Shown here in pieces: positions 1 to 30,907 of a DNA stretch of 64,000 bases. Positions within the stretch are counted from its first letter, which is position 1. Each line of letters opens with the position of its first letter. This DNA comes from Ylistrum balloti (taxonomy: Eukaryota): assembly GCF_031769215.1 (NCBI RefSeq), contig NW_026781986.1, forward strand, positions 310,001-374,000, written 5' to 3'. The notes under the pieces are model-generated. The model had not been told where the DNA came from, ran no database searches, and worked only from the letters and a program-made list of their open reading frames with translations. The translations under genes and the position numbers were made by a program.

Positions 1-403
1 AAGTATGACCGAAAGGTTGAAGTAAAGTTGAAGTGAGGTAAATTTAAGTTATGAATAAGGCAAAGCTTGTCTTCGTCAATGATACCTTCAATATATCTAT
101 TTTCTGGATGTTTTCCATTGACAAAAATCGATTCTCTAAGATCACATATTTTTATGTGGCTCAATGTTCGTGATTTTGTGTTTAAATGCTAGTTTGTGGA
201 CTATTTGTTTCGTGGATAATATAGCTCAATATATTTACCTACACTTATTTAACAATTCGTGGGCAAATGTATTCATGGATCAAGAGTACATACCTCATTA
301 ATGAAAATTTATCTTCCACCAAAATGAATGATTTTACGGTAAATAAACACCTTCTCGATCATAATACATTTTAGTACAGTAACTGTAGTTTATCTCATTT
401 CAG

Positions 404-533
404 GAGCCACAGATTTCGTGGGTTTGAACTTTTACACGTCTAATCTGGCAGAATATTACCTGGACGAGACATATGCACGTGATTATTATTCTGATATGGA
501 TGTCCACTTGTCGAAAGATCCTTCCTGGCTTGG
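404..533 (+). CDS. GH1 domain A exon ([12 protein letters not shown]...DPSWLG)
   Basis: CAG acceptor at 401-403, GT donor at 534; 130 nt, same size and phase as 9405-9534 and 16413-16542. Confidence 0.93.
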
Positions 534-3500
534 GTAATTATATCTAAACCACTCTATGGATGTCCACTTGTCGAAAGATCCTTCCTGGCTTGGGTAATTA
601 TATCTAAACCACTCTATGGATGTCCACTTGTTGAAAGATCCTTCCTGGCTTGGGTAATTATATCTAAACCACTCTATGGATGTCTACTTGTTGAAAGATC
701 CTTCCTGGCTTGGGTTATTATATCTAAACCACTCTATGGATGTCCACTTGTTGAAAGATCATTCCTGACTTATATAAATATACGTATATATTTACACGCT
801 TTTATCTAACACAGAACTAATCGTTTGTGATTATGCGGGTTTGGTATGGTAAACAAGACTATCCGCGATTGTAAACATCGAGATTCGAATACTAGAATTA
901 TGTTTGATTTGTTCATGCTGTTGTAGATCAGACTTGAATATACGGGCATAACCTATTTAGTGTTTTTGTGGTAGTACTACATTCACTTTTTATTTTTTTT
1001 TTAAAATCAGATCCGGATCATCCTGGCTCACGGTCACTCCGTTTGGAATACGTCGCATGCTGAACTGGATCAAGAACCACTATGGTGACGTACCGGTTTA
1101 TGTAACGGAGAATGGAGTCTCCGACAGAAACGGCTCCTTGACTGATGATCATAGAATATTCTACTACAAACACTACATCAATGAAGTCCTGAAAGGTTCG
1201 TATATTTTATCGATTTTGGAATCGTTGAATTTTGAATTTAATTAAATAATGTTATTGAACCTTGAACATTGCTTTTTACTGGGTGGAGGCTGCTTGTTGC
1301 TTTAATATTTGCTTTTAACTATTTGTTTGTGCTTTTCTTTCATAAAGATAAGACAAGTTTGCTTTATAACCACACTTTGCTTTCCATGACTTTGTTTCAA
1401 GGCCAGCTAGAAACACTGGGTGCCAACATTTTAGAAACTAAGAGTTCAAGTGAAATGCATGTAAACACTAAAATGCTCTTTTCTAATTATGAAATCGGTT
1501 CCCTTCAGCCATTCACATAGACAATGTTGACGTGCGCGGTTACACTGCCTGGTCGTTGATGGATAACTTTGAGTGGTCGCGAGGATATGCCGAAAGATTT
1601 GGTCTCCACTACGTCGACTTCACTGACCCGAAACGACCCCGTACGCCTAAAGCTTCAGTCCAGTATTACCGACAGCTCATCCAGGATAACGGATTTTACC
1701 GACTGTTGCCGACTGCTCAAATAGCACCAACCACGCCGAAAAGTATATCAGGGTCAAGATCTTTACATCAAATACCATTACTTATGGTAACTGGACTCTT
1801 CCTAGGACTTAGATTTCTTACGAACACTGTGACAAAACGTGTTAATTATCTATGTATATGATATTTTTTTCACTTGTATGTAATAAAAAGTTTACAATTT
1901 GAAGAGTTTTAGGGAGACAAGCAGGAAAAAAGAAGCAATGCGTCATGTACATTAAGGAAGGCAAGGGGGATATTCTTCTTGAAAGAATAAGAGTTTTATC
2001 CATGTATCTAGTTTTCCTCACGAATGAAGAAAAATAGGAAACGTAAAATTGCAAAGATATACCGGAAGATGAAAACTTTGCTTTTAATAGCATTACTCTA
2101 TTGCATACGTCTCTGATGTATTAAACCAAAATCACGGTATGACCATTTTGCTATGCAAGTCACAAAGTGACAATTTTTTTATCTACCATCAAACCATACA
2201 CCCAATTCAACAATTCTTAAAATACATTTATTAAGATGTTCTTCATGTCTAAATATACAAAAAGTTGTTAGTAGGCATTTTTTTCTTTTTTCTATTATAA
2301 CATGTCTTGATATTATATGCCATTCATCGCTCCGGGTGCAAATAGCTGAATATGGTAAACCTGTATCTTCTGTATTTATCGAGACTGTGTGAATAGTTGA
2401 TATAAATTAGTACAATGTAAATATGTTTTGCGGCTTTATTAAGTAAATATTACAGCAGTATATCAGCATAATATAAACTGTGTTTTAACACTGTCTCCTG
2501 TATGATTTGTTTGTCATGCTTTTGGTGCTCATACCAAAATTATATTCATACCAGAACTTCTTAAGCAATCAGCAGTTTGTTTCTGAGACAGAGATAACTC
2601 CAGAAGTATTATGATTGGTATCATAATAACGTGTAAAGACCATGGCTAACTGAATTATTTAATTCTGAAAACCGTTTCATATATCTTCATTTAAAATGTA
2701 CTTAACCTACAAGTAAATGATAATATCTACCATGTCTGTTTATAGAGAAGCAATCAAGAGAGTGTTGTATTGAAAATTCATGTCAGATCATGATAAATAA
2801 AGAATTGATTGAAACTGGAAACAATTCAACAATTGGTATTTGTAATTTGCATATACTTCCTTATATATCGTTGTGTTTACTTACAGAATATAACTTGGAT
2901 ATGTTTTGATTAATGGAATTAATGGGAAATGGCTGAGCTAAGTCATCTCACACCTGATAGCGCTATTGTATCAAAGAAGAAAAAAGTATAAAAAGCTTGT
3001 GGTAAACCTGCCTGTTTCTTTGTTGCTTATTCCCAGAAATCGCTTTTGATCCTACTGCTGACGTCGTTGCTTAACCTTGCAAGCTTCTAACCTTCTTCAC
3101 AGAAAAGCAGATTTCGCTAACTTGATTTACGCTTCAAAGACACCATATATGTACATACCTTTATTTCAATACTTCACTTGACATCCATAAACCAGATCAA
3201 ATAAACGCAAATCTAGACAGTGACATACTAATTAAAATAATAATCTTAATACCATTCCAAATTTTATCAAAAAACTATATTTAACAAAAAATCCAATTAA
3301 TCACAGATTTCATCTCTGAACTCTTATCTTATTCCTCTGCATTTTGAATCGTTTTAAAACTTGTTAAACTTCGAAACACAAGTCACTCAGTCGTCACAAA
3401 CGCATTATTCTACTCTTGTAACTTTATTGTGATTTGAATTGTCGTACATAAATATACTTGAGAGAATGACTTCCTAATCATATAACTTGAAATGGACTTT

Positions 3501-6500
3501 GATCGTATCTGAAGTAAAATGTATATGACGCGTTACCAAATCTCTCTAATGCAGACGTCCATGTCTTAAACTAAAAATTCGAAACAAGTTCATTTCAAAT
3601 GCAGTAGCTTACTGAAATGTTCCTGTATAAATCTGCTTTTAAAGTTATTCAAGTTTGGAACATTTGTTTGTGGAATATTTGCGTCTATTCAAGCAAAACT
3701 AAGACATACTAAGGTTTTCGGTTTATTATACGACAATTTGTCGTTTAGGGCAAATCAGCACAACAAGATACAAGGAAAAAGAAGCCATCAAAACTTAAAC
3801 TAAACCCTTAAAATTATGTAAACTACACAGCAAATGAACCAGTACGCAGGTAAATAAACAAATATGGGCTATGCAAAGGTTCAAGATAAGTTTTCACTAT
3901 GATTTACAATTTTTCAAATTTTCAATATGATTGAAACTAGCTTAATAAATACATGTAAATTTATGACCTTATATAGAAAAATTCTAATCACGATTTCTGA
4001 ATTTTGATGTAAGAAGCCTTTCATGAATCACTGATTTTTTAACCCTTTAACTAGCTTAGTATATAAAGGTAAACTTATGACCTTAGATTGTTTTTTCCTA
4101 TTCACAATTTCTGAATATTTCGTGTAAGAAGACTTCCATGAATAACCGATTCTTTAACATTTTAATGCTAGTGGTACATTAATTTTACGTCAGAGTGCAG
4201 GAATTTAAATGAAATTTTATAAAATTATAATACTAATATTGCAGCAAAATTGTAGTGAAAGTCATTTTGAACTGAAGTGCAAAAATACAATTTCTTAAAG
4301 AGGAAAAGGTCTCAGTGTAACACACTGATTTCTTTTGACGACCTTTACATGTTATAAACAAGCAGTGAAGCTTTCTTTCTTGAAATGCATTTTTGGATTA
4401 GCCAATGCTTGAGCTCATACACGGCGTGACTTCTCTGTCTACAAACTTTGCTGATTGATCATTTTCAGTTGAAATGACTTGTCATCAGTCGTTTTTTTTC
4501 ACTTTGAAAAAAAAACTGCAGTACAATATATGTTATTCATTCGTTAAATGCTACATCTTCTTGATTAATGACTTTAATGTGCTGTTGTTATATCCTATTT
4601 AGCTGATTACATAGGTTACCAAGTTCAAAGGAATAATTTCATCTTGCTGTTTAGCAAATCCAAGAATGCAAGTTTAAGTCTAGCAAGTTTTCATCAGTAA
4701 GATCATATCAACGAACATCGTTTCTAAAACAGAAACGTAGAGTAGGCTTCTGGTGACTTCATCACATATCTTTTATAAAGATCATAGTGATGTCATTCTT
4801 TCTATACCGGTTTCCTGCAGCCATTAACTTAGACAATATCGATGTACGTGGGTATACTGCCTGGTCTCTGATGGATAACTTTGAGTGGTCGAGAGGATAC
4901 TCGGAGAGATTCGGTCTCCACTACGTCAACTTTACAGACCCAGCGCGAACAAGGACGCCCAAGGCCTCGGTAAGGTTTTACCAAAAATTGATTCAGAACA
5001 ACAGATTCTTCAAAACCACGCCCTCTAAAACTCCTTTGCTGTCAGGCCGTGGTCCCCTCATACAGGAAAATGATTTCATGTACGGAACCTTTCCAAAAGG
5101 ATTTGCATGGAGTGCAGCAACTGCGTCCTACCAGGTCGAAGGCGGCTGGCAGGCAGATGGTAATTTGTGTTCATTTATTTTCACGCTTAATAATAATCAA
5201 ATTCAATTTAACTTTTGAAGATTTATGTAATGTAAATTAACCCAGTCCTAAAATCAGTCATTAATGTCACACATAATTTACATACATACAATCCTAGATC
5301 AGACTTCGTAATAATATTGAAATAATTGCCAACACAGAGAACCTGTAAATATATTACGACATTATGTTTTATTTCAGTATTGTTCTTTTCTATTGGCCCA
5401 ACTTTGACCTTGCATTATAATATACGAGTTTTCAAAAATACACACATCTGTAACGCTATGCGAAATTGATTTGTTTGGTGATAAGGTATCAGACACAATG
5501 CTATACCCTATCGTCGTCAAGAAAGAAATAATATTCATGACATTTGTGATTTAGTTTTGAGATCAATATCTTTTTTATTATCTTGTTGCTTTAAACGTTT
5601 TAATGATACTGAAGGAAATAGTATATTTCATACAAATTTAGAATAAGATACAGCAAAAATAAACAATAAATAAACCTGCAACACACAGCTCTTATGTTTC
5701 GCCCTTCTTGAATTAGTCGGTAATGTTAAGTGTCTAAATCTTAAAACCAGCTAGTAGGCGACTGAAGAAAACCCAAAGTGAACAAACGAAATGTCAAAGT
5801 CTAGATAGGGAAGTGCGCTGGCCCCATCATTGAATTAATTTTGTTCTTTTTACATATTTGATATTAAAAAAAACAAAGTGCGTTCATGTTTAATAAATTA
5901 TCATATTTGAGTATCTGTAATTTGTCAAAATTGACATTTGTTACCTGATCAAATCAAGGATTAAATGTTTAAATCTTGAAAAATCATTATGACAAAAACA
6001 TTTTCCAAGAGCTATTTTTGTTTACATCCAAATGATACAATGCCGATTTATTGGTAAAATCACGATTAAAAAGACCTCTTTAAAGAACTTCTTGCGTTGA
6101 GTTAATGTGCTTTGTATTGGATAAACCAGTGATAACAATTTATCACAATTTCTCTAGGTAAAGGTCCTAGTATCTGGGATACGTTCTCTCACCAAGGTCA
6201 CGTGGACAATAATGACACGGGTGACGTAGCCTGTGACAGTTACCATAAATACTTGGATGATGTTCAGCTTCTCAAGAACATGAAGGTATATTTTTCTATA
6301 TTTTATCATTTTTTGTAATTACAATCAGGAGTATCCCGTAATACATAACCTCCCTGAAGGACAATTTAGCTTATACCATGTTATTAAGTTTTCCTTTCAA
6401 CGACTCCTTTCTCAATGAAGGCACTAGAAACTGATATTGGGATCTTTAACATGCTTAGATAAAGGATTGCCAAGTTTTTAAATATGAGTGACCGTTACCT

Positions 6501-9500
6501 ATTCTCAAGATCACGTGGGTCAAATGCGTTTAAATTTTCAAACGACTTTTCAATAAACAAACGTTTCAGGGTACCGATATTGTGCTTGTAGAATGCGGTG
6601 GTGAAGGCTTGTCAAGTTAGTGTAAATAAATAACCTTGACATTTTTTAACAAGCGATACAAAAAAATATCAAACAAAAAAAATATTTCTCAATAACCAAA
6701 AGGTTTAGGGTACTGCTGTTGGGTATGTTAAATGCTGGAATGAAGTAGATCAGTCATTCTTTTAAATAACCAATAAGCCCTGGTTATGCGTAAAAAGCAT
6801 GCTGTGAATATATTTATCAAGTTTGCAATAAATTGACTTTACAAACTATTTTTTTTCTAAGCTTCAGATCATGTGAGCGATTCAGGCTTATTGCTAGTCT
6901 ACTTTGGCGATAACCGTTTATTATCGAAGAGAGCAAATTAATGTAGTTATAGTGCGCAATAAGTGTCTGGTTGCTCTTGCGTGACCAAAAGAAATCACTC
7001 GTGTTAAAAACAATGAAATAGCCCTACTTTGACGCTAAAAATCAATTATATTTCATGTGTTTTAAATACCAATAACTGAAAACATCAATGCTTAATTATT
7101 GATTTCACGATCAATTGACAATTAACAATTTACTCGTCTCTGATATCCTACTTTACTACTTCCTTTTAGCGTTTAAAAAATGCAGTATCCAATGAACATC
7201 ACATTTACACGTATCCATATCTTATTAATAACTACATGAATTTAATATTTTTAAAATCTTAATTTATGACAAAAATGGTGAGTCAATATGATTTAAACAA
7301 ATATTTACATTTTAAAATTTTAATATATGGAACGGATACTTCCCTGTTCCTGTCTAGTCCCGCTAATACCAAATCACCTGGATTGTTTACAATATTTTAG
7401 GTATTTCATATATTTTTAAGTTGATGACAAAGATATGATTTTTGTTAAATACAGGTGACACATTATCGTTTCTCCCTGTCATGGCCCCGAATATTACCTG
7501 ACGGAACAACAAATATTATAAACCAAGCGGGGCTGGATTACTATGACAAGCTTATTAACGCCCTAGTAGAAGCTGGAATAACACCGATGGTAACACTCTA
7601 CCACTGGGACCTGCCCCAGGCTCTACAGAACAGAGGTGGAGGCTGGTTAAATGCCTCCATAGCTGACGTTTTTGCCGACTACGCCAAATTTGTTTTCGAG
7701 AAGTTTGGAAACAGAGTAATTACAAAATAAATTACAACTTTGTATAAATTTTTTGAAAGAAAGAGATTTATATATTTATATATATAGAATTTGTTTGTCT
7801 GTTTTCAATAACCCTTAGACCCTTAGTATAATTGAAGAGTTATAGGACAAATCAGCGCTATGATGCAGTTTAATTTAATAGTTTGGCTCTTTTGTATCTT
7901 GAAATGTGATATTCACTTGAGAGTCTTGTGTACTATTTTCTTACGATCCCAGAACTAAAACAGGTTCCTTACTTCAAAATAATACTAAATTTTGTTAAGG
8001 ATGACATTTGTTGAGGCCATATTTTGTACGAACTAAAAAAATCTAAATGAAAGTAAACGTCCATACTTGTATTTCATACCTGAGAAAAACAACAATAAAT
8101 ATTGACATATAATGTTTATTTCTATTCGCATAACAATTAGGTGAAAACATGGATCACACTTAATGAGCCATGGGTGGTGGCTATGAAGGGATATGGGGAC
8201 GGAAGCATGGCACCTGGGATTGCAAGCCCCGGGAACAGCGTTTACATAGCTGCCCATAACCTCATTCGGGCTCATGGAAAGGCATATCGTGTCTATCAAA
8301 AGGAGTTCAGCCAAGTTCAAAATGGTACAGAAATGAAAACTTTTCTTAAATTGTGATTTTCGATTTTAAAATTTTGAAATGTCAAACTTTTCCTATGCGA
8401 CTGTTTTCTGATAAATTACAGGTTGACAAGGCTACTGCTTCGTAAATTTAATAATATGTCACATATTTCATATTTCTTATTTTTAAGGAAGCGTGGGTAT
8501 TACATGTAACTGTCACTGGACTGTCCCCAAGTCGGAGGGTAGTCGTTTGGACAAAGCGGCCGCCGAGCGCGCGCTCCAATTCCAACTAGGCTGGTTCGGG
8601 CATCCTATTCTCGTCAATGGCGATTACCCGGATGTCATGAAAAGGCAGATTGCTAACAAAAGTGAAGCACAGAATCTTCCAAATAGCAGACTCCCACAAT
8701 TTACATCAGAAGAGAAGCAATATTTAAACGGTAGGAAACGTCAAAAAATCATCAAAAAAAATAATAATAATTGTCGCGTGAATTTAACACATAGTCCTTG
8801 TGAACTTAATTTGATAAATCATGAAACAATTTCGTTATTCAAATTCAATGTTCTGCAGTGTCTGAAGTGTAGCATCACATATAATACAGGATTGAAACTA
8901 TAAAAAAATTAAAAATCTACAAACGCTTTCTGTCACTCGGAACATGTCAGCTGCTAAAAAAGTTTATATTTTATCCCGCTGGTAAATTGGTCGTATTAAA
9001 ACTGGTTTTATAATGGCAAATATAACATTTTAAACGAAAAATTGAAAAGATTTAGCATTAGATATGAAATACGCTGTTCAAGTTTGCTATATTTGTGACT
9101 GAGTGGAAAGACGCAGTCATGAATCCAATTTAAATCACTATTGAATGTGTTATGCCATATCATTGTTCTTTGAAGACGTAATGACACAATTATACAGATA
9201 TTGTTTGTATGTTGTGACATAATCAGATAGATGAAAAGGAAATTCAGAATAAGATATAATTTGTTTTACCCCACTGAACCAGTAATTAAACTTTCTGTTC
9301 GTTCTTGGGGACAAAGAATGAATATTGTTAATATGGCTGTTTACAATATTCACAACACATTTTATGAAAGATAAATTATTCACGTGTTGTTGATCAACTT
9401 TCAGGCTCTGCTGATTTCATTGGACTTAATTTCTACACTTCTGACGTCATACAGCATTATGAAGACCCAGACTTACCATTGGATTATTACTCAGACATAG

Positions 9501-12500
9501 ATGTCAAAATCTCCAAAGACCCTTCTTGGCTCGGGTATCGTTTTTACTTATGTTTTATAGTCATAATATCAATAAGGTTGTTGAAATTTCGCATTCGTCA
9601 TAATTAAACACAACGGCATAAACGAAAGGAAGCATTGATAAAGCGAAAGGGTTCGATTGGAAAGCCAGCAATAACATTTTAACAAAATGAAAACAATCTG
9701 AGCAGCCTAGTGTATCAGTGACTCAATATATAATTTTGTCTCACCTTTGAATGAAGGAAGAAAGACATATTGGTTTAGTAATGTCTTTTTTCTTTGGCTT
9801 ATTCTTCTTCTTCTAGTACTTTTTTGTCAGGTAATAATTTTAAACCGTAAAAGATATCGTAATAGAAGTTCTTTACTTCTATTACCGAAAACCTGATGTG
9901 CAGTGCATTGCCGTTAGGTTACTATGACCTTGATCTCAATGTCAGATACTAGATAATTTATTCTAGTCATGTCCTAACAATGAACCCTGTCGAACTCCAG
10001 CAGAAGTGTTATTGTCTTTTCTTACAGTACTTAACAGTACAAGAAACATTTATTAGTTGCGATCTTTCAAAATATACATTTGTATTGTTTCACATTAGCC
10101 AATACTCTCTTAATTTGAAAATAAAATACATGAATATTCATTAAGACAGGCTAAATTAACACACTCGATAATATGTGAATGGGATATACATTTGATATTT
10201 TGATATTATCAGCCAGTTCTGATAATGAATCGTATTGTAATTATGTGTGAAATAATTGCTGTATCTAGTAGGTTTACTTGTTTTAGCTACCAACACTTAC
10301 CAATATTTTCAACAATAAGATAATGTCGAAAAAAAATGATTGAGAACAGTTTTTTTCTAGCAAACACATTATACTACAAAACAGCAAATATATTCGCTAC
10401 AAAGGAGATATCTATGTTCGAGACGTTTCATCAATACAGGCCTTAAGTTTCCATGGTGTAAAACACGGCAGTAGACGTGGAGTAGGAGACGCTTACAGTT
10501 CTGGAACATCTGGTCATGTACTGTTTACTTTGTAATAATTTTGTTTTCGCCATATCCTAGTTTTATTCTTAATAACGTTTTACACGTGGCAAACAGGAAA
10601 CGGTTGGTCTAAGTGTTTAGAAATCCGTCAGTGAAGTGTACCATCACACTAACTTTATCATTTTGTTTCGCGAAGACAAGCTGTTGTTAAAATCGATCAG
10701 TTTTTATGAACAGGATTAAAGGGCCTGAGGGTCTAACTATGGGGGAAAACTAGGGCACATGTGAAAAACCCACGTGCTCGGACGTACAGCCCGATTGAAG
10801 TTTTTTTTCTTTTCACGGCCGATTAGCGAATCAAACTTTAGTTACCGAAGTGAACGAGTGCGTTACCCTGGCGACCATTCGACAACCTGAACAAGATTGT
10901 GTCCGGAATGCATGGCTTTAATGTTTTTCTTTCTTTTCAGATCTGGATCTGATTGGTTGAAAGTGACCCCTACTGGGATACGCCGTATGCTGACATGGAT
11001 GAAGGACCATTATAAGGATGCCCCTATCTACATTACAGAAAACGGGGTGTCCGACAGGAATGGCTCGCTGCTAGACGAACATAGAATAAACTATTACAAA
11101 CATTACATCAACGAAGTCCTAAAAGGTAGCAATTCATCTTTGTAAATAGTCGTTTTATACCGAGTCAAAGTATATTTTTTTTCATATCGGGTTTCTCAAA
11201 GAGGTCACGTACTGGTGATAAGAACCGAATTTAATATAATACATTTATGCCGTTTTGAATAAAATATTTTATCGTTGTTTCCATTGCACAGCAAGAACCA
11301 GCAACAGCAAAATGAATATCGAAAAAGAAAAATGCCGTAAGATCAAATTGACTTATATTTTTACCATAGATGTGTACATCTTAAAGTATTAAAAACATTG
11401 AGATTCCAATGTTTGCACCGCTAGGAGGTACTCCTGTTGATATATGCTATTTCGTTCTTTCATATTGTCCCGAAATAAATGATATTTCAGCAATTCACCT
11501 GGATAACGTGAATGTACTAGGCTACACTGCCTGGTCGTTGATGGATAATTTTGAATGGTCGCGAGGATACGCGGAGAGATTTGGTCTCCATTACGTGGAC
11601 TTTTCCGACCCAAAACGACCTAGGACACCTAAAGCCTCGGCCCAGTACTATCGGCAGCTCATTGAAAACAATGGATTCCAGGAGCTTCAATCGAAACCTG
11701 CACCTCAGACAGAAGGAAGTGAATTCTTCTATGGAACTTTCCCGGAAAATTTTGCATGGAGTGCTGCGACTGCAGCGTACCAGGTAGAAGGTGGCTGGAA
11801 GGAAGACGGTACGTATCAGTATTGTCAACATCTGAATAGCCCATCAACACAGAAAGTGTTAAAAGGACCAATACAAGATACCATGTTGAAAAGGAAACAG
11901 CAAGAAACAAATTGTGATGTAAAAAATGATCTCTAAACATCAACTGAAAACTAACGTTAAAAAATATAATCACACACATAATTAAAACGAAAAGTTTCTG
12001 CACCTTTTCCTGTCGTATGGAAAATGGCTAACTGCTCTCGTATATTTAGAATCATGTGTACATCAACGTTTTCAAATAGAGGGTTTATATTTGTAGTGCA
12101 TTACCAAAATACCAAGCGCATACATACATTCTAATAGAACAAGGTTTTAAAATAAACTGCAGATGGTATGTTATGTTCCAAGGCCGGGTCATCGTGCTTT
12201 GATATAAAGGAATATACAATGTATGTATTTATTTGCACCTTTATGACATTGAAACCACTGGCAGACTTTTGGTATTAGAGAATGTATTCTTTGTTAACAT
12301 AGTTGTTGGACTCGATCCTATATATGTAGTCTGTCTAAAATCATTGATTACAAGCCGATTTAATGACTCAAGCTGTTTGGTTATGTGATGATTTGGTCAT
12401 CGGAGATGTTCTGTGGTAGAACAAATATGGAATCGGAGCTTAAATACATACATTACATCTATCGATGTGTTCGAGCGTAATCACGAGGTCCCCCTTACGA

Positions 12501-15500: not shown

Positions 15501-16162
15501 GACTAACTGTTATTATAAAAATGGCAAGTTAGATTAAATGATAAAATGCCTTATACAAAATTCATATCAAGCAGTAAATGGAAAGCAATCCGGTTTCTTA
15601 TAAACATACCTATTTTCTGAAAATACCGACTGACTGTTAATATAAAAAAAACGGCAAGTTGGATTAAATAGAAAAATGTCTTATTTATGCAAAATTCATA
15701 CCAGGTATCAACACTTCTGTTTTAAAAGAAATTAGAATTAACATCTTCTTGTCTGTGTTGAAATCAATCGAACCGTTTTCATATTTTTCTTCTTCAGCGG
15801 TTCAGGGTCATATCAATATTAGTTTCGGTGCAGCACAAAACATACTACATGTATTGCCTATCTGTTTTCAGGGAAGGTCGGTATCACATGTAACTGTGAC
15901 TGGGAAGTACCGAAAAGTGAGAATGTTCCCTCCGACCGAGAAGCAGCCGAACGCGCCCTCCAGTTCCATTTCGGTTGGTTCATTAATCCAGTTTTGAACA
16001 ATGGTGATTATCCAGACGTCATGAAATGGCAGATCTTAAAGAAGAGCATCACCTTGCAGAAGTTAAAGCAAAGCAGACTGCCAGAATTTACCAACGAGGA
16101 AAAAGAATATTTGAAAGGTACAAACTCAGTATCTATAACTCAAAGGTACTGTACGATATATC

Positions 16163-16193
<31 letters not shown>

Positions 16194-19100
16194 CTTAATC
16201 ATGAAGAGATCCCATTACTGGCTACCTTTCCAGAACACCCGGTCGTTCTCTTTGTTCTATTATCAATGGATCAGGAGATTGCAATAAATATTGTTCTATT
16301 AACAATATCTATTATGTTTAGAGACATAATAGAATATTGCATTGGTTGATAAATAATTAATTTCATGAATAGATGATAACAATTTCACTAAATTCATTTT
16401 CTCTGAAATTAGGTGCCACCGATTTTCTCGGTTTGAATTTCTACACCTCAAACCTAGCAGAAAATTATATCGACCCATCCACTCAGGCCGATTATTACGG
16501 CGACATGGATGTCAAGCTTTCTAAAGACCCGTCGTGGCTTAGGTGAGTTTAGTTTGGTCGCCTTCAAATACCAGTGTCACCCAGTGGTCTTGACAACCTG
16601 TAAAGGAGATATCTATTTTGCTCGCAATGTGTGTGTGTATTAGCTCGCAGCTTGTTCATTTATATGTTGTTATGATTATTTGTGGGGTACAAGCGCACGT
16701 TGTATATTACTCTAAATCAGTTATCATAAGCAGTCTAAAAATCTTTCGATTTTTCAAAAAGGTTGTTTTCTTCGCTTATAATATAATATCACGGATCACT
16801 TTTGCTAACACTAAAATTCACAATTAATATTGGACACTAAAATTATCAATCAATGTCCGTTAATACTATAAACGTATATAATTACACGTTATGTTCATAC
16901 TTAAATCAGAGTGATTTAAATATCAATATTTAACAATTCTTAGTATAAGCAAAGTCTTAGAACTGAATCGGGGTCAGAGTACAATATTTATTATCATCAT
17001 TATATAAAAAGCAAATAAAAGTTATTTTTCATTTAACCAAAGATACATTGATAAAATTTGTATCCCTATTTGCAACTACCGTTTACTTTACTTGTTAGGT
17101 CCGGATCATCCTGGCTCACGGTTACTCCGTTCGGAATACGACGCATGCTGAACTGGATCAAAGATCACTATGGTGACGTACCAGTATATGTAACGGAGAA
17201 TGGAGTCTCCGACAGAAACGGCTTTTTGACTGATGATAATAGAATATTCTACTACAAACACTACATCAATGAAGTCCTGAAAGGTAAGTAAATTACAATG
17301 GGATGCGAGGATAACATATAGCGGCTGATTTTTGCAAATAGTTAGCGACAATTTTCGAGAAAAGGCATGGGCAAAACACAAACAGTTAAAACTTATATAC
17401 TTCATCCAGGATGTAGGATGTAGAGATTGTATAAAAATAAAACATCACAAGTTTGTGGCAGGGCTTCCCTTTTGTCACACTAATTAATATAAATTAAGAT
17501 ATTTTGTTTAAATAACAAAGTAAAAGGAACAGAGAGTATGGTATGGCGTCAGTTGTGTTACTCCGATCATTTTGCTTTCAACATCAAATTCATTTGTCTT
17601 ATTTCAGCCATTCACCTAGACAATATCGATGTACGTGGGTATACTGCCTGGTCTCTGATGGATAACTTTGAGTGGTCCCGAGGATACTCGGAGAGATTCG
17701 GTCTCCACTACGTCAACTTTACCGACCCGGCGCGGCCTAGGACGCCAAAGGCCTCTGCCAAGTATTACCGGAACATCATCCAGGACAACGGCTTCATCCC
17801 TGGTACAGAGACTGCGCCTACAAGTTCATCCCCATCGCCAATGATACAAAAGAGAACCTTGGAAAAAGAGAATGTCTTTGTGTATGGTCTATTCCCACAA
17901 GAGTTTGCATGGGGTGTGACAACATCCGCCTATCAAACAGAGGGAGCATGGCATGAGGACGGTAAATCATTTTCATAAAAAATGCTGGTCTGCGAGACGC
18001 TGTTTTTCTTCCTTTTAATTACCTCTCTGTCATATCCTCTTCCGTTTTTCAAAGTTTAACGTTGAATGAATTTTGGAAAAATGCTTTGCTGTCGTTGAAC
18101 GATCTTATAAATGCACTGCTTGCGTGCAGATGCGGAAAAGTATATCGATGAGGTAATGGCTATTTCAAGTTAATCTGAGTCACACAAGGCATATATCTTC
18201 CCTATCGATTTATCAATCCTAAAATATCAGGAATTAACTGATACAAAAATACAACATGTTGTACAACCCCTATAACCCTCTATAAACTTCCATAGGCCAT
18301 GTTATATGGGCCTTAATCGTTTGTATCTATCAACATAATAAAGTCTTTCAACGTACAGAGACCTTTTATATCGGTTAATGTATTAACGATGCTTAAGGTA
18401 ATATCAATACATTAAGCATTGCAACTGCTACGCTTAATTCAATAAAACATCAAATTTATCGTATCAGTTGCAACGTTTAATGTAATTATAAAAATATAGA
18501 GCGAAGCAATCGCAACGTTTATTGCAATAAATGTTATATCAAGCATTTAAGAGTTACAACAAAGAACTAAATCAAAAGTCACTGAACCATGGAACAATTG
18601 AATGTGAAGCATTGTTTTGTTTAACCGATTTGTTGCTGTAACGTGTACTTATACAGTTCGATTGTAAATATAACCAAAGTCCAATACAAAACATATCCAT
18701 TGACATGATTTTCATTATATACCCGGGAAAGTCTTGGCAAATAAAACAAAAACATTAAAGTACTCACCTGCTTCACATGGATGTGAGTCGAAGTTGTGCC
18801 GAAATGCAGTGAAACTGCTAATGAATTTTTTACCGCTTGAAAAACGATTGTGGGTACATAACGAAGAAAATTTCGATATTTTGAGATTTATATATCATAA
18901 ACGCTCTACACTATTTCTTAGATAGACTATATATAACCCTATAACCCTAATTATATGTTATCAAAAAGAACAATATAATTTATTGGTTGGGGATATAAAA
19001 TTTAATGCTTAATTTCATATCTGTTCGCATGGTTATAAAAGTTGTTATTATAATATGTTATTTGTCCACATATTGAACAATTTAATAGTTATGTAATTAA

Positions 19101-22100
19101 CACGAATGTAAATTGATTGTTTTATTCTACAGTTTGGATATAATTTTCCAATTTAGCCTGCCGGTACTCAAGATCGTCAGTAACATATATATATACAGTT
19201 CTTATTTACTCGAATGTAGATATTTCCATTTTCACAGAGAAGACTGGTAAAGAAACCAACGAAAAGCACATTTAAATACAAATGTAGACTTAGACACAGT
19301 GAGCCAAACAATAAATCGAAATCCTTCATCTGTTCCATTCTTATTCAAGAAGTCGTTAATGATGCTAACACCTAAAATGTTGAAACCACAGAGGCGACTT
19401 TAGATCATCCAATTTGTGCGAAAAAGAAATTTCAGAAATTAAATTCAAAATTCAATTAATTTCATAGAACACAAAGTACATATGTTTATTTTGAGCTGTG
19501 CCACTATTTGACTGGATAGAAATGCAGCACGCTGCGACAGTACACCTGGGGGCTGGAAGTCTGCCAGCAGTGTCTTCCACCCGCACACACAAGTGAATAA
19601 CATTTTTAATACAAATTTAAAACCAGATACAAAAGAGCCAAACAATGAATTAAAAACTGTACAAAAGACACACAAATAGAGAGCATCTTTTGTTACAAAT
19701 TTGATTTAAACTGCGTTATACAACAGTTTCGTCCTTTTTGGGGCTCGTCAGTGATTTAAACAAAGGGCAAATCACAAGTAAACTGAAAGCAGTATTTATC
19801 AATAAGGAAGAATGTTAGTGAAAGGAATACCAATAAATGTATCTCCCTCGGCCTGTTGTCATTTCAGGTAAGGGCGCAAGTATATGGGATGTTTTCACAC
19901 ATAACCGTAAATCTCCTAATTATGACACTGGAGATGTCTCTTGTGACAGCTACCATTACTGGCGGGATGACATTACTATACTGAAGAAACTCAAGGTAAA
20001 ATCAAAAATACACGTAACAATTGAATGAACTGTATAATGTATAAGTGACTTAAATCAAACATCATTCTTTTTAACACATTTTCACCATCGAGATATTTCC
20101 AATTCAAAATGAAGTGAATACTTGTTACTTTTGAAGTAAAATGCAGAAAATAACAACTTGTTTCCTGAATAACTTATTGCAGGTATCAAGTTATCGGTTT
20201 TCTATCTCCTGGTCTCGAGTTTTACCTACTGGATCAGCCAACAACGTTAGTAAAGCTGGTATGGAGTATTACGACCAGTTGATCGACGCCCTGGTGGAGG
20301 CTGGGATCGCTCCCGTAGTAACACTTTATCACTGGGATCTACCACAGTTCCTGAATCAAACTGGAGGATGGCTTAATGACGATATCATCACACTGTTTAC
20401 TCACTTCGCTGACCTTTGTTTCTCACGGTTTGGTAATCGAGTAAGTATCATTCATAACCCGTTTCGAATCAGATTTAAAAAATGTGTAACACAAATAAAA
20501 TGAAAACAATTACTGTAATAGTTATTGCGTTATTCAGGATTGTGCTTATTTTCGGTTTCATTCATCATTATTTACTCATTTTTCATACCTTTTAATTTGA
20601 CATCTTTGTCTATGAACATTTCTTTATTCTCATCTCTGGATTTCAGACAACTTTTTATTCTTATTTCACATTAACATAGAAAATATTTGCTATTTGACTC
20701 TATTTGATTTCTATTTCTGACATTTGATCCTCATAGGTAAAGACTTGGATTACAATATCAGACCCCTATTCCATAGCTGTAAAAGGATATGGACAAGGAA
20801 CCTTGGCCCCTGGAGAGATGAATCAGGACGTGTACAAAGTTGGGTACAACCTCCTACTAGCTCACGCTGCAGTTTACCATTTGTACAGCCAGAAATACCT
20901 ACCTTATCACAAAGGTGTGTAGGTCAACTGATTATAAAAGCAGAGCAACATGGCGTATCATTCTCAGAGCGATGTCACTCTAAGTTGGGAAAACTGTAAA
21001 AATGTCATCTTGAAAATGTTTTGCGGTTGTGAACTTAAACAGCAAGGTATTTCATCTGTTTACAGGTAAAGTGGGGATAGCACTCACTGCACCATGGGCT
21101 GAACCATTGAACAAATCACACGAAGAAGATGTGCTGGCATCAGAACGCGCGCTTCAATTCATGCTCGGATGGTTTGCCAACCCAATATTCAAGGACGGAG
21201 ATTACCCCGATGTGATGCGAGCATCCGTACTTAAGAATAGTTTGATGGAAAATAACCTCGACAGTAGATTAATTAAATTTACGGCACAGGATAAAATAAT
21301 GTTACAAGGTAAGGTTTAATCTATTTATAATCTATACCCACAGTTCTTTTCCTTTGTATGTGTCATCAAACAACTCCTCTCTCTTACTTCACCACCAAAC
21401 TATACATTGGTGGGAAAGAATGTGGTTGCTGTATGTTAGAGAATTCGGGGACTATTAAGTGGACATCGGGGGGGGGGGGGGGGGGGGAATAAATAGATAT
21501 GCTACCGTCTTTGAAACTAAATTCTTACCATTTCTTTCTTTTCTGTCCACTCAACATTTTCCAAGGCAGGTTTGACATTCATTCTATCACGCAACTGATG
21601 AGAACGTTGAATCCCATGAAACTTTACTACCATCATGTTACCTTATCAGACGACGTTTCTGGTGCAAGATAGGAGCAACAACGTGTCAAAAATATAAAAT
21701 CCGTAGATGGATTTAATCTTAACATAACCATATAACAAACTCTAAAATTTTAGTTCTCAAATTCGGATTTTTGTAATACGCCATCTGCTGTTCATAACTA
21801 ATTATTATCTTGTCCACAATAAAGTCAATATGAACAGTTTTGCAAAAAATTGTGTGACGACTTAATTTTCCAAATGTGATTTACCATTTTTGGATACAAC
21901 ATTCCTGCGTCCCAAACATTACATATCGCAGATGATTCTAGGACCTGTTTCAAATATCACAAATTTCGCGCAAGAAATTGACAACTTACAGAATTTGTTG
22001 AGAAGTATTCTATTTCTGTGTGCGATAGTATGGTGCATGTTAAGACAAGTTGATGTTTTGATAAATCAAATATCTTGACCTGAACTTGGTGACTCACAAG

Positions 22101-25038
22101 GATTGTTCGTCCAAAAAATTGTTTGTTCGTTTCGTTTAAATATTGGGTTTAATTTGCAGGTTCTGCTGACTTCTTAGGACTCAACTACTACAACTCCATA
22201 GCGGTCAAACGAAGTCCACAATCACAGACTCTGACTTATTTCTCGGATATGAATGTTGATATCAGTGCTTCCATCCCATGGCAAACGTGAGCATTGTGTA
22301 TCTGTCAAGCATGTTTATGTCCCACCAAATCTGTAGCAGAAATGGGGGACATATACCTTTACCCAAGACCGCCCGTACATTCCCGTCTCCTCACGTACGG
22401 TATAAATTATATATCTTTAAATCCTCTCTACAGATTTGTATCCTGTCTTACCTATAGCATCATAACAACAAGATAAACATTTGTTATATTAAAGTTGTCA
22501 TCGGTCAGTGTTATAGGTCAAAGATCACATTTGACATTTAATGCAATTCCATCAAACATTGATATATATATAACACATCTATATCCTATATACAGGAGTT
22601 ATTTTAATATTTTATTTTCACACTGATGACTCATCATCTGATAAAAATAGTTTTGTCTTTCACGAATTTTCCATGACACCAAGCTGCAGTTGGCTGTCTA
22701 AACGGACTTTTACAGCTCTGGTGGCAAAACCAGGAAGTGGAAAACAACCATTTAAATGTCATTAATCAGTAGCCATTCTATTAGAGGTCATAAATCATTC
22801 TTAGTTTAATGGCATATTTTCACTGGAAATATGATCAATGATATTAAACAATAAGACATCAATTACAACTTGTTTATTCTGTGATAAAATTACCATTGAT
22901 TTAAAAACATATATAGGTAGATAAAGTTATAAGGTTTAAAGATGAAACGTATTTCCTTTTCGGAAACATTTCATTTGTTTTAAGAACACGATTTTTGAAA
23001 TTTTGGAATTGTGTCCGTGTCAACTTACCCGATAAAGAACAAATTCCATCGTTTATTTATATACATGAAGAAAAATGACGCTTAAAGGAAACGACAAAAA
23101 ATGTGTCGCACAGACTGTAAAGAACAGTTGAGTCAGAATAGCCTACAACAGAGATACATAATGTACCTTCACACTATATTGTGTTTTGTATCTGTGTTTC
23201 TAAGCTGAAGAATGTTATCTTGCCTATTTTGACTTTTTTTTTACATTAGCACTGGCCATATGACGAAACCCCCAGAGGGACTACGACGGATTCTTAACTG
23301 GATCCACCAATCATATTCCTCGGTGCCGATTTACGTCACAGAAAACGGGATGTATGACACGACTGGTACAATGGAGGATACAGATCGGGAGGAGTATATA
23401 AGACAGCACACCAATCAACTGGTTAAAGGTAAAAAATCATCATTTTAACATGTATTGGCTTTGTAGAGTTACAAGGTGTTACACTCTGATCCTCGCCAAA
23501 ATCCTACTTATACATATCACAGGAAGAAATGACTGTAAAATGCTTCACCTTTTCTTTTGATCACTTTGGATTTCCCTTAGTCGCCTCCTAGGCTTCAAAA
23601 TGTAGGACCATACCCTCACTGACGAGTCCTAGAAGGACGAAACAGATGTATTTTGCAGTTTAATTCATTGTTTGGCTCTATGTATCTCACTCTAAATTAT
23701 GAAAAGGTGTTATTCACTTGTGTGTCATTTGTTCAATCTTCTTGACGAAAACCAAAGATTCAAATATCCACGAGCGAAATTTCTTCAAGTTCAAGATGTC
23801 GTATAAATCTCCCATTATCAACTTGTCAGTACAACTATAGATAACAAAATATATAAAAAGACAGAAATCTAAGATATCTTGTTGAAATTCGTTTTATATT
23901 GAATCATATCTTACGTCTTACATCAGAGGAGTACAACCGTAAAACAAGCAAAAAATCTTTAAAACTTCGGTGGTAAAATTTGAAGGCAGTTGTGTACCTG
24001 TTGATTTCTGAATTTTACATTATAAATATAAACTTTATTTATTTTACAACAATTGCGAAACAAGTTATGTCAACTTATACTAATCACTCTTGTTGGCCCG
24101 GATGTAAGCGCGCTAGGGGTCTTATTGTGGGAGGAAACCGGAGTACCCGGGGAAAACCCACGTGGTTGGGCAGGTGACCCCTTACCTTTTACATTACGTA
24201 CAATTAGAATGCCCCACCAACACAGATAAGGTACTTTGAGTCCGATGTTTAGTGAAATGATAAGTCTTCACTGAATTAGATAAAGTTATTTAACACATGG
24301 TTAACTATACCTTTTACCTTTATAAAACCGTTCTGAAAATTTCCCATCTTAATTTATTGATTATGAGTACCGGAATTTCTGCAATGTTGTAATCTTAGAT
24401 AGAAACACTCACTGTGAGTGTAGTCTGTATAACATGGGTATATATTTAAATATTTATACGTCTCCATTACAGGTAAGAGCAACAAATTAAGTTTTATAAC
24501 TGAATTTCTGAATTTCACGAATTACGAATGTATACCACAACTGTGGAACACGAGAAATCCCTTCAGTCAAAATTTCACTTTTATAAAGTGAAAATTAATT
24601 CACTTTGTTTTAACCCATTCGGCTGCTGAGAATCATGAAACATCCTAATTTTATGGCATAAACACTTATTTACGTCTTTTTTAAAATTTTATAGCTATAA
24701 ATCTGGACAGAGTCAATGTCCAAGGATATTTCGTCTGGTCATTGATGGACAATTTTGACTGGGAACATGGATATACACGGAAATACGGACTTTACCACGT
24801 GGACTTTGAGAAGACAAAAAAGACGCGCACAGCTAAAAGGTCTGCAAACTTTTATAGACAGCTTATAGCCGATAATGGTTTCCATGACAACAATACAATG
24901 ACGTCAAAAGCACCTCTCGCTGTGGTCACAACAACTCCTAAACAAAACCACGGAATATCCGGGACATTCTCCCTTCACCAAACACCATTACTACTGATCA
25001 CTCTTCTCACAGGATGGACTCTTGTATCTTCTCATTAG
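404..25038 (+). CDS. LCT-like: Multi-domain GH1 beta-glycosidase (lactase-phlorizin hydrolase-like), 5'-partial; long isoform of 24 exons in window, at least 4 GH1 domains (A partial, B, C, D) plus C-terminal GPI-like signal
   Basis: Exons traced by hand with GT-AG boundaries: 404-533, 1011-1195, 4821-5159, 6158-6285, 7455-7715, 8141-8324, 8488-8730, 9405-9534, 10941-11125, 11491-11808, 13373-13500, 13838-14098, 15277-15460, 15872-16117, 16413-16542, 17099-17283, 17608-17961, 19868-19995, 20183-20440, 20737-20914, 21066-21308, 22160-22286, 23250-23428, 24695-25038. They total 5048 nt; with 1 nt from the upstream exon this is 1683 codons including the stop, with no internal stop. GH1 motifs recur in each domain ([49 protein letters not shown]). 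The start of the gene lies upstream of the window. Confidence 0.95.
495..771 (+). repeat. 60-bp tandem repeat (about 4.6 copies) made of the last 39 nt of an exon plus the first 21 nt of the intron
   Basis: Near-identical consecutive 60-nt lines; each unit contains ...TGGCTTGG|GTAATT. Confidence 0.97.
1011..1195 (+). CDS. GH1 domain A exon carrying the nucleophile motif VTENG
   Basis: Poly-T tract then AG; 185 nt; phase-1 donor G|GTTCG. Confidence 0.95.
1509..1861 (+). CDS. Alternative terminal exon: end of GH1 domain (WSLMDNFEW), Thr/Pro linker, hydrophobic anchor-like tail, stop
   Basis: cccttcag acceptor in phase 1, in frame with 1011-1195; TGA at 1859-1861; AATAAA at 1882-1887; tail homologous to that of 24695-25038. 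Confidence 0.85.
1882..1887 (+). terminator. Candidate polyadenylation signal of the short isoform
   Basis: AATAAA about 20 nt after the TGA at 1861; the hexamer is common in AT-rich DNA, so support is positional only. Confidence 0.5.
3935..4165. repeat. Degenerate 114-bp tandem duplication (2 copies)
   Basis: aactagctta...ttatgacctta recurs at 3935 and 4049. Confidence 0.8.
4821..5159 (+). CDS. Junction exon: end of domain A, linker, start of domain B
   Basis: tttcctgcag acceptor; [23 protein letters not shown]...[23 protein letters not shown]; 339 nt, phase 1-1. Confidence 0.95.
6158..6285 (+). CDS. GH1 domain B exon (GKGPSIWD...[10 protein letters not shown])
   Basis: 128 nt, AG/GT boundaries; too short for the ORF track. 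Confidence 0.93.
6390..6900. mobile_element. Degenerate non-autonomous element with ~140-bp internal repeats (Helentron-associated/HINE-like)
   Basis: Motif (cagggtac)tgatattg..c.tgtag.atgc recurs at ~6430, ~6575 and ~6713; ends with gtgagcgattcaggc, resembling bivalve HINE-type ends as I recall them. Confidence 0.45.
7455..7715 (+). CDS. GH1 domain B exon ([10 protein letters not shown]...YHWDLPQ)
   Basis: 261 nt, phase 0-0. Confidence 0.95.
8141..8324 (+). CDS. GH1 domain B exon with acid/base motif TLNEP
   Basis: 184 nt, AG/GT boundaries. Confidence 0.95.
8488..8730 (+). CDS. GH1 domain B exon (GITCNCHW...GDYP...LPQFT)
   Basis: 243 nt, phase 1-1. Confidence 0.93.
9405..9534 (+). CDS. 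GH1 domain B exon ([12 protein letters not shown]...DPSWLG)
   Basis: 130 nt, AG/GT boundaries. Confidence 0.93.
10455..10560 (+). mobile_element. Dispersed repeat family X, degenerate copy
   Basis: ggagacgcttacagttctggaacatctggtc matches the core at 12800, 51700 and 60690. Confidence 0.55.
10700..10885 (-). mobile_element. Degenerate tRNA-derived V-domain SINE
   Basis: Reverse complement aligns with the 46463 copy (aacgcactcg..ttcact...gtgaaaag...cacgtgggttttt). Confidence 0.6.
10941..11125 (+). CDS. GH1 domain B exon with nucleophile ITENG
   Basis: 185 nt, strong pyrimidine tract. Confidence 0.95.
11491..11808 (+). CDS. Junction exon between domains B and C
   Basis: 318 nt, phase 1-1; WSLMDNFEW then [18 protein letters not shown]. 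Confidence 0.95.
12795..13000 (+). mobile_element. Dispersed repeat family X copy
   Basis: acatggcgggtgtcg...gcttactcttctagaacacctggtcttattctcc...ttcgttcatattttc shared with the 51565-51852 copy. Confidence 0.7.
13373..13500 (+). CDS. GH1 domain C exon (GKGPSIWD...DSYHKY)
   Basis: 128 nt; 39 of 43 aa identical to 6158-6285. Confidence 0.94.
13838..14098 (+). CDS. GH1 domain C exon ([10 protein letters not shown]...YHWDLPQ)
   Basis: 261 nt, phase 0-0. Confidence 0.95.
15277..15460 (+). CDS. GH1 domain C exon with TLNEP
   Basis: 184 nt; [19 protein letters not shown]; donor G|GTAAG. Confidence 0.94.
15463..15705. repeat. ~120-bp intronic tandem duplication starting at the donor site
   Basis: gcaatcc..tttcttataaacat..ct...aaataccgact.actgtta occurs twice; the second copy lacks GTAAG. 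Confidence 0.85.
15872..16117 (+). CDS. GH1 domain C exon (GITCNCDW...GDYP...LPEFT)
   Basis: 246 nt, phase 1-1. Confidence 0.93.
16413..16542 (+). CDS. GH1 domain C exon ([12 protein letters not shown])
   Basis: 130 nt; donor AG|GTGAG. Confidence 0.93.
17099..17283 (+). CDS. GH1 domain C exon with VTENG
   Basis: 185 nt; 173 of 185 nt identical to 1011-1195. Confidence 0.95.
17608..17961 (+). CDS. Junction exon between domains C and D
   Basis: 354 nt, phase 1-1; includes an S/T/P-rich linker ([12 protein letters not shown]). Confidence 0.95.
19560..19770 (-). mobile_element. Short element with a hammerhead-ribozyme-like core (antisense to the host gene)
   Basis: Minus strand reads CTGACGA-GCCC-CAAAAA-GGAC-GAAA-C-TGTT-GTA; downstream flank (tttaattcattgtttggctct...tgttattcacttgtgtgt) is homologous to the 23617 copy. 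Confidence 0.6.
19868..19995 (+). CDS. GH1 domain D exon (GKGASIWD...DSYH)
   Basis: 128 nt, AG/GT boundaries. Confidence 0.93.
20183..20440 (+). CDS. GH1 domain D exon ([10 protein letters not shown]...YHWDLPQ)
   Basis: 258 nt; donor GTAAGT. Confidence 0.94.
20737..20914 (+). CDS. GH1 domain D exon with degenerate acid/base motif (WITISDPY)
   Basis: 178 nt; translated by hand as [26 protein letters not shown]...AHAAVYHLY. Confidence 0.92.
21066..21308 (+). CDS. GH1 domain D exon ([11 protein letters not shown]...GDYP)
   Basis: 243 nt; donor G|GTAAG. Confidence 0.93.
21468..21487 (+). repeat. G20 homopolymer in intron
   Basis: 20 consecutive G. Confidence 0.95.
22160..22286 (+). CDS. GH1 domain D exon ([11 protein letters not shown])
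   Basis: 127 nt; donor AC|GTGAG, phase 2. Confidence 0.9.
23250..23428 (+). CDS. GH1 domain D exon with VTENG
   Basis: 179 nt, in frame with the previous exon. Confidence 0.92.
23617..23725 (+). mobile_element. Short element with a hammerhead-ribozyme-like core (sense to the host gene)
   Basis: CTGACGA (23619-25)-GTCC-TAGAA-GGAC-GAAA-C-AGAT-GTA; perfect 4-bp stem II. Confidence 0.65.
24081..24195 (-). mobile_element. V-domain SINE fragment
   Basis: Reverse complement contains gtgggttttccccgggtactccggtttcctcccaca, identical to the 46463 copy and matching the V-SINE central domain. Confidence 0.8.
24695..25038 (+). CDS. Terminal exon of the long isoform: end of domain D, Thr-rich stalk, GPI-signal-like hydrophobic end
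   Basis: WSLMDNFDW; ...[36 protein letters not shown]; TAG at 25036-25038. Confidence 0.93.
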
Positions 25039-30890: not shown

Positions 30891-30907
30891 GACAGACAAA
30901 TCATGCA

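Follow-up and report, generated by a model that had tools for sequence, protein, structure and literature searches.

A candidate alternative last exon with its own anchor-type tail in a scallop gene for tandem glycoside hydrolase family 1 domains

The window analysed here is a stretch of 64,000 nucleotides (nt) from the scallop Ylistrum balloti (assembly GCF_031769215.1, contig NW_026781986.1, positions 310,001 to 374,000 of the forward strand), and it holds the 3' 60% of the gene LOC132544951. This gene is predicted to encode a secreted protein of eight tandem glycoside hydrolase family 1 (GH1) domains, similar to those of lactase-phlorizin hydrolase (LPH). The present analysis concerns a region of this gene where one splice donor faces two in-frame acceptors: the proximal exon ends in a stop codon preceded by an anchor-type tail, and the distal exon leads into three further domains. 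The corresponding RefSeq protein (P0360, 3839 residues) bears the name 'uncharacterized protein LOC132544951 [Ylistrum balloti]'. It was reached through a profile search, using a long molluscan relative and the window exons, and then through a search with the Mizuhopecten protein. A signal-peptide-like hydrophobic leader is followed in P0360 by eight GH1 units within one open reading frame (ORF), and eight units are likewise found in the exon maps of Pecten and Argopecten. The window exons are 100% identical to P0360 over 404-533 (which matches from residue 2148), over 1011-1195, and over the proximal exon up to its residues PLLM; identity is again 100% from ENDFMYG to the end of the protein (1495 residues). 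The four units that an earlier, sequence-only reading of this DNA had lettered A, B, C and D correspond to domains 5, 6, 7 and 8.

Not all of these domains appear equally equipped for catalysis. Domains 2, 3, 5, 6 and 7 of P0360 contain both the NEP and the ENG motif. Domain 8 carries SDP at the acid/base position and keeps TENG (window 20737-20914), and neither NEP nor ENG was found in domains 1 and 4. Judged by motif, only five of the eight domains look catalytically complete.

The donor at 1195 lies in phase 1 (AAAG/GTTCGT) and is in frame with the acceptors at 1509 and 4821. The first acceptor (ttcccttcag/CC) opens an in-frame exon of 116 full codons, referred to below as the ALT exon (1509-1861), whose first 62 residues correspond to positions 395-453 of the 453 positions of the GH1 profile. 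They are followed by a stalk of Pro, Thr and Ser, with the small residues S-G-S at 1748-1756, and by a short hydrophobic tail. The second acceptor (tttcctgcag/CC) also opens an in-frame exon, the domain 5/6 junction exon (AB, 4821-5159), which covers profile positions 396-452, a linker and the start of domain 6. When finished by the 1509 exon, domain 5 (P0360:1830-2345) matches the Pfam GH1 profile PF00232 with 565 bits, above the curated cut-off and over positions 3-453 of 453, and the exons starting at 1509, 4821 and 24695 each supply approximately positions 395-453. If 1195 is joined to 4821 and the GT-AG exons are followed to 25038, a single ORF of 1681 residues in 24 exons is obtained, with its sole stop at the end. 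The locus thus has the layout of an alternative last exon, namely one donor, two in-frame acceptors and a stop in the proximal exon. On these points, the sequence-only reading is borne out. It had described the two in-frame partners of donor 1195, a proximal exon that ends the barrel, stops and is followed by AATAAA, and a distal exon that completes the same barrel and continues into three more domains.

The 1195/4821 pair mirrors the 17283/17608 pair found further downstream, as had also been proposed: 1009-1206 shares 92% nucleotide identity with 17097-17294, and 4818-5011 shares 87% with 17605-17798, the similarity being confined to exons while the introns do not align. The alignment of the ALT exon with the junction exon extends over the final 13 intron bases in front of 1509 and of 4821, which argues that the two exons are local duplicates. 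Compared with every paralogous exon of Ylistrum, ALT shows a proportion of synonymous differences (pS) of 0.67-0.79, near saturation, and a proportion of nonsynonymous differences (pN) of 0.09-0.15; its divergence is no faster than that seen among undoubted coding exons. The tail was duplicated as well. The local alignment of the ALT tail with the true C-terminus scores 69, against 23 +/- 4.6 for shuffled sequences, none of 2000 shuffles reaching 69. The ALT tail is homologous to the true C-terminal tail and comes from the same stock, in agreement with the sequence-only reading.

The orthologous loci of three other scallops, Mizuhopecten yessoensis (L006), Pecten maximus (L008) and Argopecten irradians (L009), were compared with the window. 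Such a comparison had been suggested as a check, and it turned out favourably: ALT is found in the same intron in all three, with its ORF, tail and stop intact. The exon order is the same in each (exon 7 of domain 5, an ALT-type exon, then the 5/6 junction exon), and ALT is separated from the junction exon by sequence that cannot be aligned, about 3 to 19 kb long depending on the scallop. The ALT-type exons of these three species start at a pyrimidine-rich CAG acceptor, have an open frame of 111-116 codons, and contain a hydrophobic run of 13-16 residues followed by a stop 5-16 codons later. Their stalk conforms to the motif PK(R)(E/H)DRG(V/A)S... and the hydrophobic run is built on (I/L)(T/S)GL(L/I/F)(I/L)G(L/I). 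Nucleotide similarity between scallops is confined to exons, except in Mizuhopecten just upstream of the ALT acceptor. The conserved block at 1746-1823, which corresponds to the small-residue motif and the hydrophobic run, lies mostly past an internal donor used by the RefSeq model, and the similarity ends after it.

Regarding the Mizuhopecten exception, the intron just before the ALT acceptor aligns over about 137 nt (1372-1508) with L006 44963-45100, as part of a single match of 70% identity. This stretch, conserved between Mizuhopecten and Ylistrum, may be a splicing control region. In Pecten and Argopecten, similarity begins only about 22 nt upstream of the acceptor.

Selection was estimated from the same alignments. 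Between species, the ALT exon has a synonymous divergence (dS) of about 1.0-2, near saturation, and ratios of nonsynonymous to synonymous divergence (dN/dS) of 0.03-0.07 in the barrel part and 0.30-0.43 in the tail; the alternative barrel end at 4821-5011 gives 0.03-0.11 between scallops. Both alternative exons have thus been kept as coding sequence in the four species, and purifying selection, which acts on both barrel ends and also on the ALT tail, implies for the barrel ends that both copies code. Since a barrel end needs a barrel body, and since domain 5 provides the only one upstream, both copies would have to be joined to donor 1195 in different transcripts.

Two less favourable views of the 1509 exon have to face this conservation. 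It could be a dead duplicate which no transcript includes, as might be suspected from the fact that no annotated isoform ends in it. Yet four species retain it intact at dS 1-2, dN/dS being 0.03-0.43, and three annotations splice into it; moreover, 47 tail codons would stay open by chance, given the composition of this DNA, with a probability of about 3% per species (our own calculation). On this comparative evidence, a dead exon is so improbable that we consider it excluded. It could also act as a poison or decoy, a terminal exon whose inclusion leads nowhere, lowers the amount of long mRNA and yields a product without function. The stop does lie far before the end of the long ORF, and the donor of exon 7 is non-consensus at +3 in four of five loci, including the window (GTTCGT), which fits a regulated choice. 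Only a stop would be needed for such a role, yet GH1 residues, stalk motif, hydrophobic run and stop position are all conserved in the protein sequence, with dN/dS far below 1, and we hold this explanation to be distinctly improbable.

Among themselves, the ALT tails score 81-111, against mostly 40-87, and once 102, when compared with the true C-terminal tails; from these higher mutual scores, the ALT tails appear to be an old separate lineage and not recent copies. In a tree of the 63-codon barrel ends, some sequences group by species, and the only well-supported group is the Pecten-Argopecten ALT pair. An attempt to date the duplication with this tree failed, the signal being blurred by concerted evolution. 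The species-wise pairing in the tree, together with the 92% and 87% identity of flanking exons whose introns do not align, points to gene conversion or concerted evolution among the barrel-end exons of domains 5-7 and ALT. Of note, the Mizuhopecten ALT is nearly identical to a junction exon of a second copy of the domain 5-8 region in that species (L007 10773-11451, scaffold NEDP02002703.1). In this second copy, exon 7 and the junction exon are only 160 nt apart and ALT is absent; its exons are 85-95% identical to those of the first copy, the introns of the two copies do not align, and assembly gaps lie just upstream of the second.

Outside scallops, an internal terminal-type exon was found neither in the eight-domain gene of the clam Mercenaria (L010) nor in the six-domain gene of the oyster Saccostrea (L011), and the feature may be specific to scallops. 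In a word search with ALT alone, among proteins of 64-203 residues, every match was a fragment of a terminal exon from another invertebrate, with 53-66% identity, on a contig that ends soon after the exon. An exhaustive search of representatives, in which clusters are represented at 50% identity, gave no close relative, and the scallop proteins were reached with longer queries only.

The nature of the tails was assessed by eye on seven of them. All follow the same plan: a motif of the type G-(V/I/A)-S-G-(S/T) comes first, a polar stretch of about 5-8 residues next, and 13-16 hydrophobic residues last. The small-residue run (G-x-S-G-S/T), about 6-8 residues upstream of the hydrophobic run, is conserved. 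After the hydrophobic run, 3 residues remain in the true C-termini and 5-16 in the ALT tails, the Ylistrum ALT tail having an atypical 16-residue extension with K and R. Glycosylphosphatidylinositol (GPI) attachment signals have small residues at positions omega to omega+2, a polar spacer of 5-10 residues and a C-terminal hydrophobic run without a real cytoplasmic tail. Runs of only 13-16 residues do not look like a type I transmembrane helix with a cytoplasmic tail, and the pattern appears closer to that of a GPI attachment signal. A GPI anchor is thus plausible for both products.

A separate start for the distal exons was sought in the interval 1862-4820. The sequence-only reading had seen no start exon there, which is nearly right: nothing in 1862-4800 is conserved between scallops, and the interval holds one candidate. 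This is a signal-peptide-like ATG exon at 2069-2108, the sole one with a compatible phase, and it was rejected as an independent start for its very poor donor (GTCTCT) and its lack of conservation in the other scallops. An in-frame ATG at 4790, 31 nt upstream of the acceptor 4821, from which the frame reads through, was also rejected, not being conserved. Within 1862-4820, no GH1 exon and no block conserved among the scallops compared were found, nor any ORF of at least 50 residues except for one on the minus strand which overlaps the 3' end of ALT. These observations bear on the idea of two tandem genes, one with five domains ending at 1861 and another with three domains whose promoter and first exon would lie in the interval. 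The stop and the AATAAA after the 1509 exon would suit such an arrangement, as would the phase of the 2069-2108 exon with respect to the acceptor 4821. Against it, the exon at 4821 starts with the last 63 residues of a barrel, under strong purifying selection in four species, which make no barrel without domain 5; the only candidate first exon has the GTCTCT donor, nothing in the interval is conserved, and its length differs greatly between species (about 3 kb at the shortest, about 19 kb at the longest). In addition, two annotations join exon 7 straight to the junction exon. Two tandem genes are thus very improbable.

In the four RefSeq or GenBank models ALT is never the terminal exon, and the models disagree with one another. 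The Ylistrum model P0360 splices 1195 to 1509, leaves through an internal donor (ATG/GTAACT, exon end 1786) and re-enters at an exon start placed at 5066, thereby omitting the hydrophobic tail and stop of ALT and the barrel end of the 4821 exon. In Mizuhopecten, P0242 reads ALT to its last codon, uses a donor that splits the stop codon, and adds about 220 non-GH1 residues before the junction exon. The Pecten model P0359, which carries a LOW QUALITY flag, includes the two barrel ends one after the other. In Argopecten, P0361 skips ALT and joins exon 7 to the junction exon, as does P0265 for the second Mizuhopecten copy. Both junctions have therefore been chosen by evidence-based annotations, exon 7 to ALT in P0360, P0242 and P0359, and exon 7 to the junction exon in P0361 and P0265. 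From the disagreement of three models over the way out of ALT, we infer that the predictors were forced past a genuine terminal exon, and the RefSeq models appear wrong here in three scallops.

The post-ALT interval of Mizuhopecten (L006 45454-64620) is about 19 kb long, compared with about 3 kb in the other scallops. Residues 1668-1890 of P0242, about 220 non-GH1 residues threaded through this interval, may come from a transposon-derived ORF.

The structure of P0360 can also be taken at face value. The 1509 exon would then be an internal cassette only, entered at 1509 and left at 1786 for 5066, the protein would always have eight domains, the tail and stop would remain untranslated, and the sole variation would be a choice between mutually exclusive barrel ends. 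P0360 has precisely this structure and is not flagged as low quality, and both internal sites are GT/AG and in frame. However, the GT of the donor exists only in Ylistrum among the four scallops, the other three having ATC ACT or TTG TCT at the position of the 1787 donor; the hydrophobic run, with a stop close behind it, persists in all four, and nucleotide conservation continues past the donor to about 1823. The three annotations that contain ALT also exit from it differently, through the internal donor, through a stop-splitting donor or by a low-quality read-through. An exon used exclusively as a cassette is thus unlikely, and the 1786-5066 splice could nevertheless be a real, lineage-specific third path.

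Read sets and poly(A) signals were also considered. A run search with sampled words recovered a single run, DNA-like in that 80% of the words were present, introns included. The Logan contigs of this run cover 300-5300 at 95-100% identity, which shows that the layout is not an assembly artefact. An apparent joint between 1197 and 4818 was examined as a possible splice of the long form and rejected: it retains the GT and the CAG, and it stems from a contig of the paralogous domain 7/8 junction, with its own intron of 324 nt, that aligned to the 5/6 region. Indeed, 1168-1197 is identical to 17256-17285 at 30 of 30 positions and 4818-4935 to 17605-17722 at 114 of 118 (97%). As for poly(A) signals, the ALT stop of Ylistrum is followed by AATAAA at +21; Pecten and Mizuhopecten have AATAAA or ATTAAA near +190, and Argopecten shows none within 400 nt. 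With this base composition, chance alone would supply about 0.5 of these hexamers per 400 nt (our own calculation).

Taken together, the data are best read as an alternative last exon, in which a terminal exon close to the donor, equipped with an anchor tail, competes with a distal path into more domains. From the sequence comparisons above, we put the probability of this reading at roughly 0.7. Several points weigh against it. The RefSeq model P0360 uses the 1509 exon as an internal exon, and its name carries no isoform label. No database lists the short isoform, a search among proteins of 1474-4690 residues having given one protein per scallop, and the run search returned no RNA run. The AATAAA is weak evidence in DNA of 35% G+C, its position not being conserved. 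Conversion from working paralogues could also explain part of the low dN/dS of the ALT barrel end, and not that of the tail.

According to this alternative-last-exon reading, splicing of donor 1195 to 1509 would complete the barrel of domain 5 and add a Ser/Thr/Pro stalk, a short hydrophobic C-terminal signal and the stop at 1861, the short transcript presumably being cleaved and polyadenylated near this point. When 1509 is skipped, splicing of 1195 to 4821 would complete the same barrel and continue through domains 6-8 to the homologous tail that ends at 25038. The choice would thus lie between splicing of the proximal terminal exon and its skipping, as in the calcitonin/CGRP (calcitonin gene-related peptide) or NCAM-120 type. 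The predicted products are five- and eight-domain enzymes, each with a stalk and a hydrophobic C-terminal signal; both junctions are probably used in vivo, and the proximal exon probably serves as a terminal exon. The short product would have five domains and about 2,370 residues, with three domains apparently active. The sequence-only reading needs correction here, since it took the short form for a single-domain protein and singled out the degenerate domain D as what it omits: the unit called A is domain 5, and the short form would lack domains 6, 7 and 8. The broader proposal that domain number may be set by alternative splicing and polyadenylation gains from the conservation and from selection at dS 1-2, a support that is comparative in kind. 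A more elaborate version would be an ancient, scallop-wide switch between five- and eight-domain forms tethered by GPI, each with its own anchor signal, to which the Ylistrum donor adds a cassette. Three products would then be made, one with five domains, one with eight domains and the first barrel end, and one with eight domains and the second. This combination is tentative, and we would sooner expect one of its parts to fail than all of them to hold. The features of the locus are collected in Table 1.

Table 1. Position of the features of LOC132544951 discussed here, numbered from the first nucleotide of the window
Feature	Position	Strand	Remarks
Exon 6 of domain 5	404-533	+	GT-AG model; identical to P0360
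Exon 7 of domain 5, nucleophile motif VTENG	1011-1195	+	GH1 profile positions 330-391; ends in phase 1
ALT exon	1509-1861	+	Barrel end to ~1699; stalk 1700-1771
ALT tail	1772-1810 (hydrophobic run)	+	Run I88-L100 (13 residues); 16-residue extension; TGA 1859-1861
Internal donor ATG/GTAACT of P0360	1787-1792	+	GT absent in Mizuhopecten, Pecten and Argopecten
AATAAA hexamer, candidate proximal poly(A) signal	1882-1887	+	21 nt after the ALT stop; position not conserved
Interval from ALT to AB	1862-4820	+	Short form: 3' untranslated region and downstream sequence; long form: intron
AB (junction) exon	4821-5159	+	Second barrel-end copy 4821-5011, linker, start of domain 6
Domain 6 (B)	6158-11808	+	Identical to P0360; NEP and TENG present
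Domain 6 exons	6158-6285, 7455-7715, 8141-8324, 8488-8730, 9405-9534, 10941-11125, 11491-11808	+	
Domain 7 (C)	13373-17961	+	Identical to P0360
Domain 7 exons	13373-13500, 13838-14098, 15277-15460, 15872-16117, 16413-16542, 17099-17283, 17608-17961	+	
Domain 8 (D), SDP instead of NEP	19868-25038	+	
True terminal exon	24695-25038	+	Hydrophobic run within ~24985-25026; TAG stop 25036-25038

Some repeats were noticed in the window. A 60-nt tandem repeat at 495-771 (4.6 copies, 97% matches) begins in the last 39 nt of exon 404-533 and copies the exon end, the GT donor and 21 nt of intron, with a series of decoy donors as the result. Since the reading frame is closed immediately behind the first of these donors, the later copies cannot be read in frame. 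An all-against-all comparison of ORFs also revealed internally repetitive, ORF-like stretches, corresponding to satellite or minisatellite arrays, at 30279-31482, 40786-41655, 45525-46405 and 57781-59420. The last array sits in an island of 52% G+C with a strong skew of C over G.

Alternative last exons that change the C-terminus or the anchor of a protein are known from calcitonin/CGRP, from NCAM-120 (GPI-anchored) versus NCAM-140/180, and from the H versus T forms of acetylcholinesterase. In NCAM and acetylcholinesterase, the proximal terminal exon encodes the GPI signal. As in these classical cases, a single donor of the scallop locus would either splice to a proximal exon that carries a stop, and may have a poly(A) site behind it, or skip this exon in favour of distal ones. 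It differs from them in that the classical alternative exons do not duplicate part of a catalytic fold and in that their products do not differ by three enzyme domains. The scallop case would thus be a known mechanism in a new family, the unusual feature being that the alternative exon re-encodes the end of a catalytic barrel.

Among relatives with a name in the databases, LPH is the best match, at about 40-50% identity. LPH consists of four domains followed by a genuine type I transmembrane helix with a cytoplasmic tail, and its domain number is lowered post-translationally by proteolysis (PMC5840672, from the LPH literature cited there). Both proteins have tandem GH1 domains, some apparently dead and others active, in one secreted polypeptide that is membrane-bound in LPH and probably so in scallops. 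The scallop protein differs by its eight domains, by tails of 13-16 hydrophobic residues with 3-16 residues after them, and by a domain number apparently set at the RNA level. Another comparison is offered by alpha-Klotho, where, beside the membrane form, an alternatively spliced transcript would, by prediction, stop the protein behind an upstream domain (PMC5991181, PMC8255843). The resulting KL1-only Klotho would lose the anchor and be secreted; whether such a protein exists is disputed (PMC8255843). Here again, the likeness lies in a tandem-domain gene of the GH1 family with an alternative transcript that truncates it after an upstream domain; the scallop short form would differ in having a duplicated anchor tail, and its ending exon also re-encodes the barrel end.

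Closer to scallops, the shipworm enzyme LpMDGH1 has six GH1 domains, four of them predicted to be active, and is soluble, with no C-terminal hydrophobic segment (PMC5840672). The same paper presents the lack of an anchor as typical of invertebrate multi-domain GH1 proteins and six domains as unique. A sea-hare beta-glucosidase of 210 kDa has two active sites according to its kinetics (PMC5840672, PMC3675134). These are molluscan digestive LPH-like enzymes with many GH1 domains, like the scallop protein, and the shipworm protein was among the matches (P0381). The scallop gene differs by its eight domains and its two anchor-type tails, and no isoform switch is described in that paper on LpMDGH1.

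Among the digestive glycosidases of molluscs, multi-domain GH1 enzymes hold a major place (PMC5840672, PMC3675134), and the reason why they have so many domains is not understood. If the alternative last exon is used as proposed, the switch between five and eight domains would be a natural experiment on the role of the extra domains. Domain number would be changed without proteolysis, unlike in vertebrate lactase, and the short form would provide an anchored counterpart to the disputed KL1-only isoform of Klotho.

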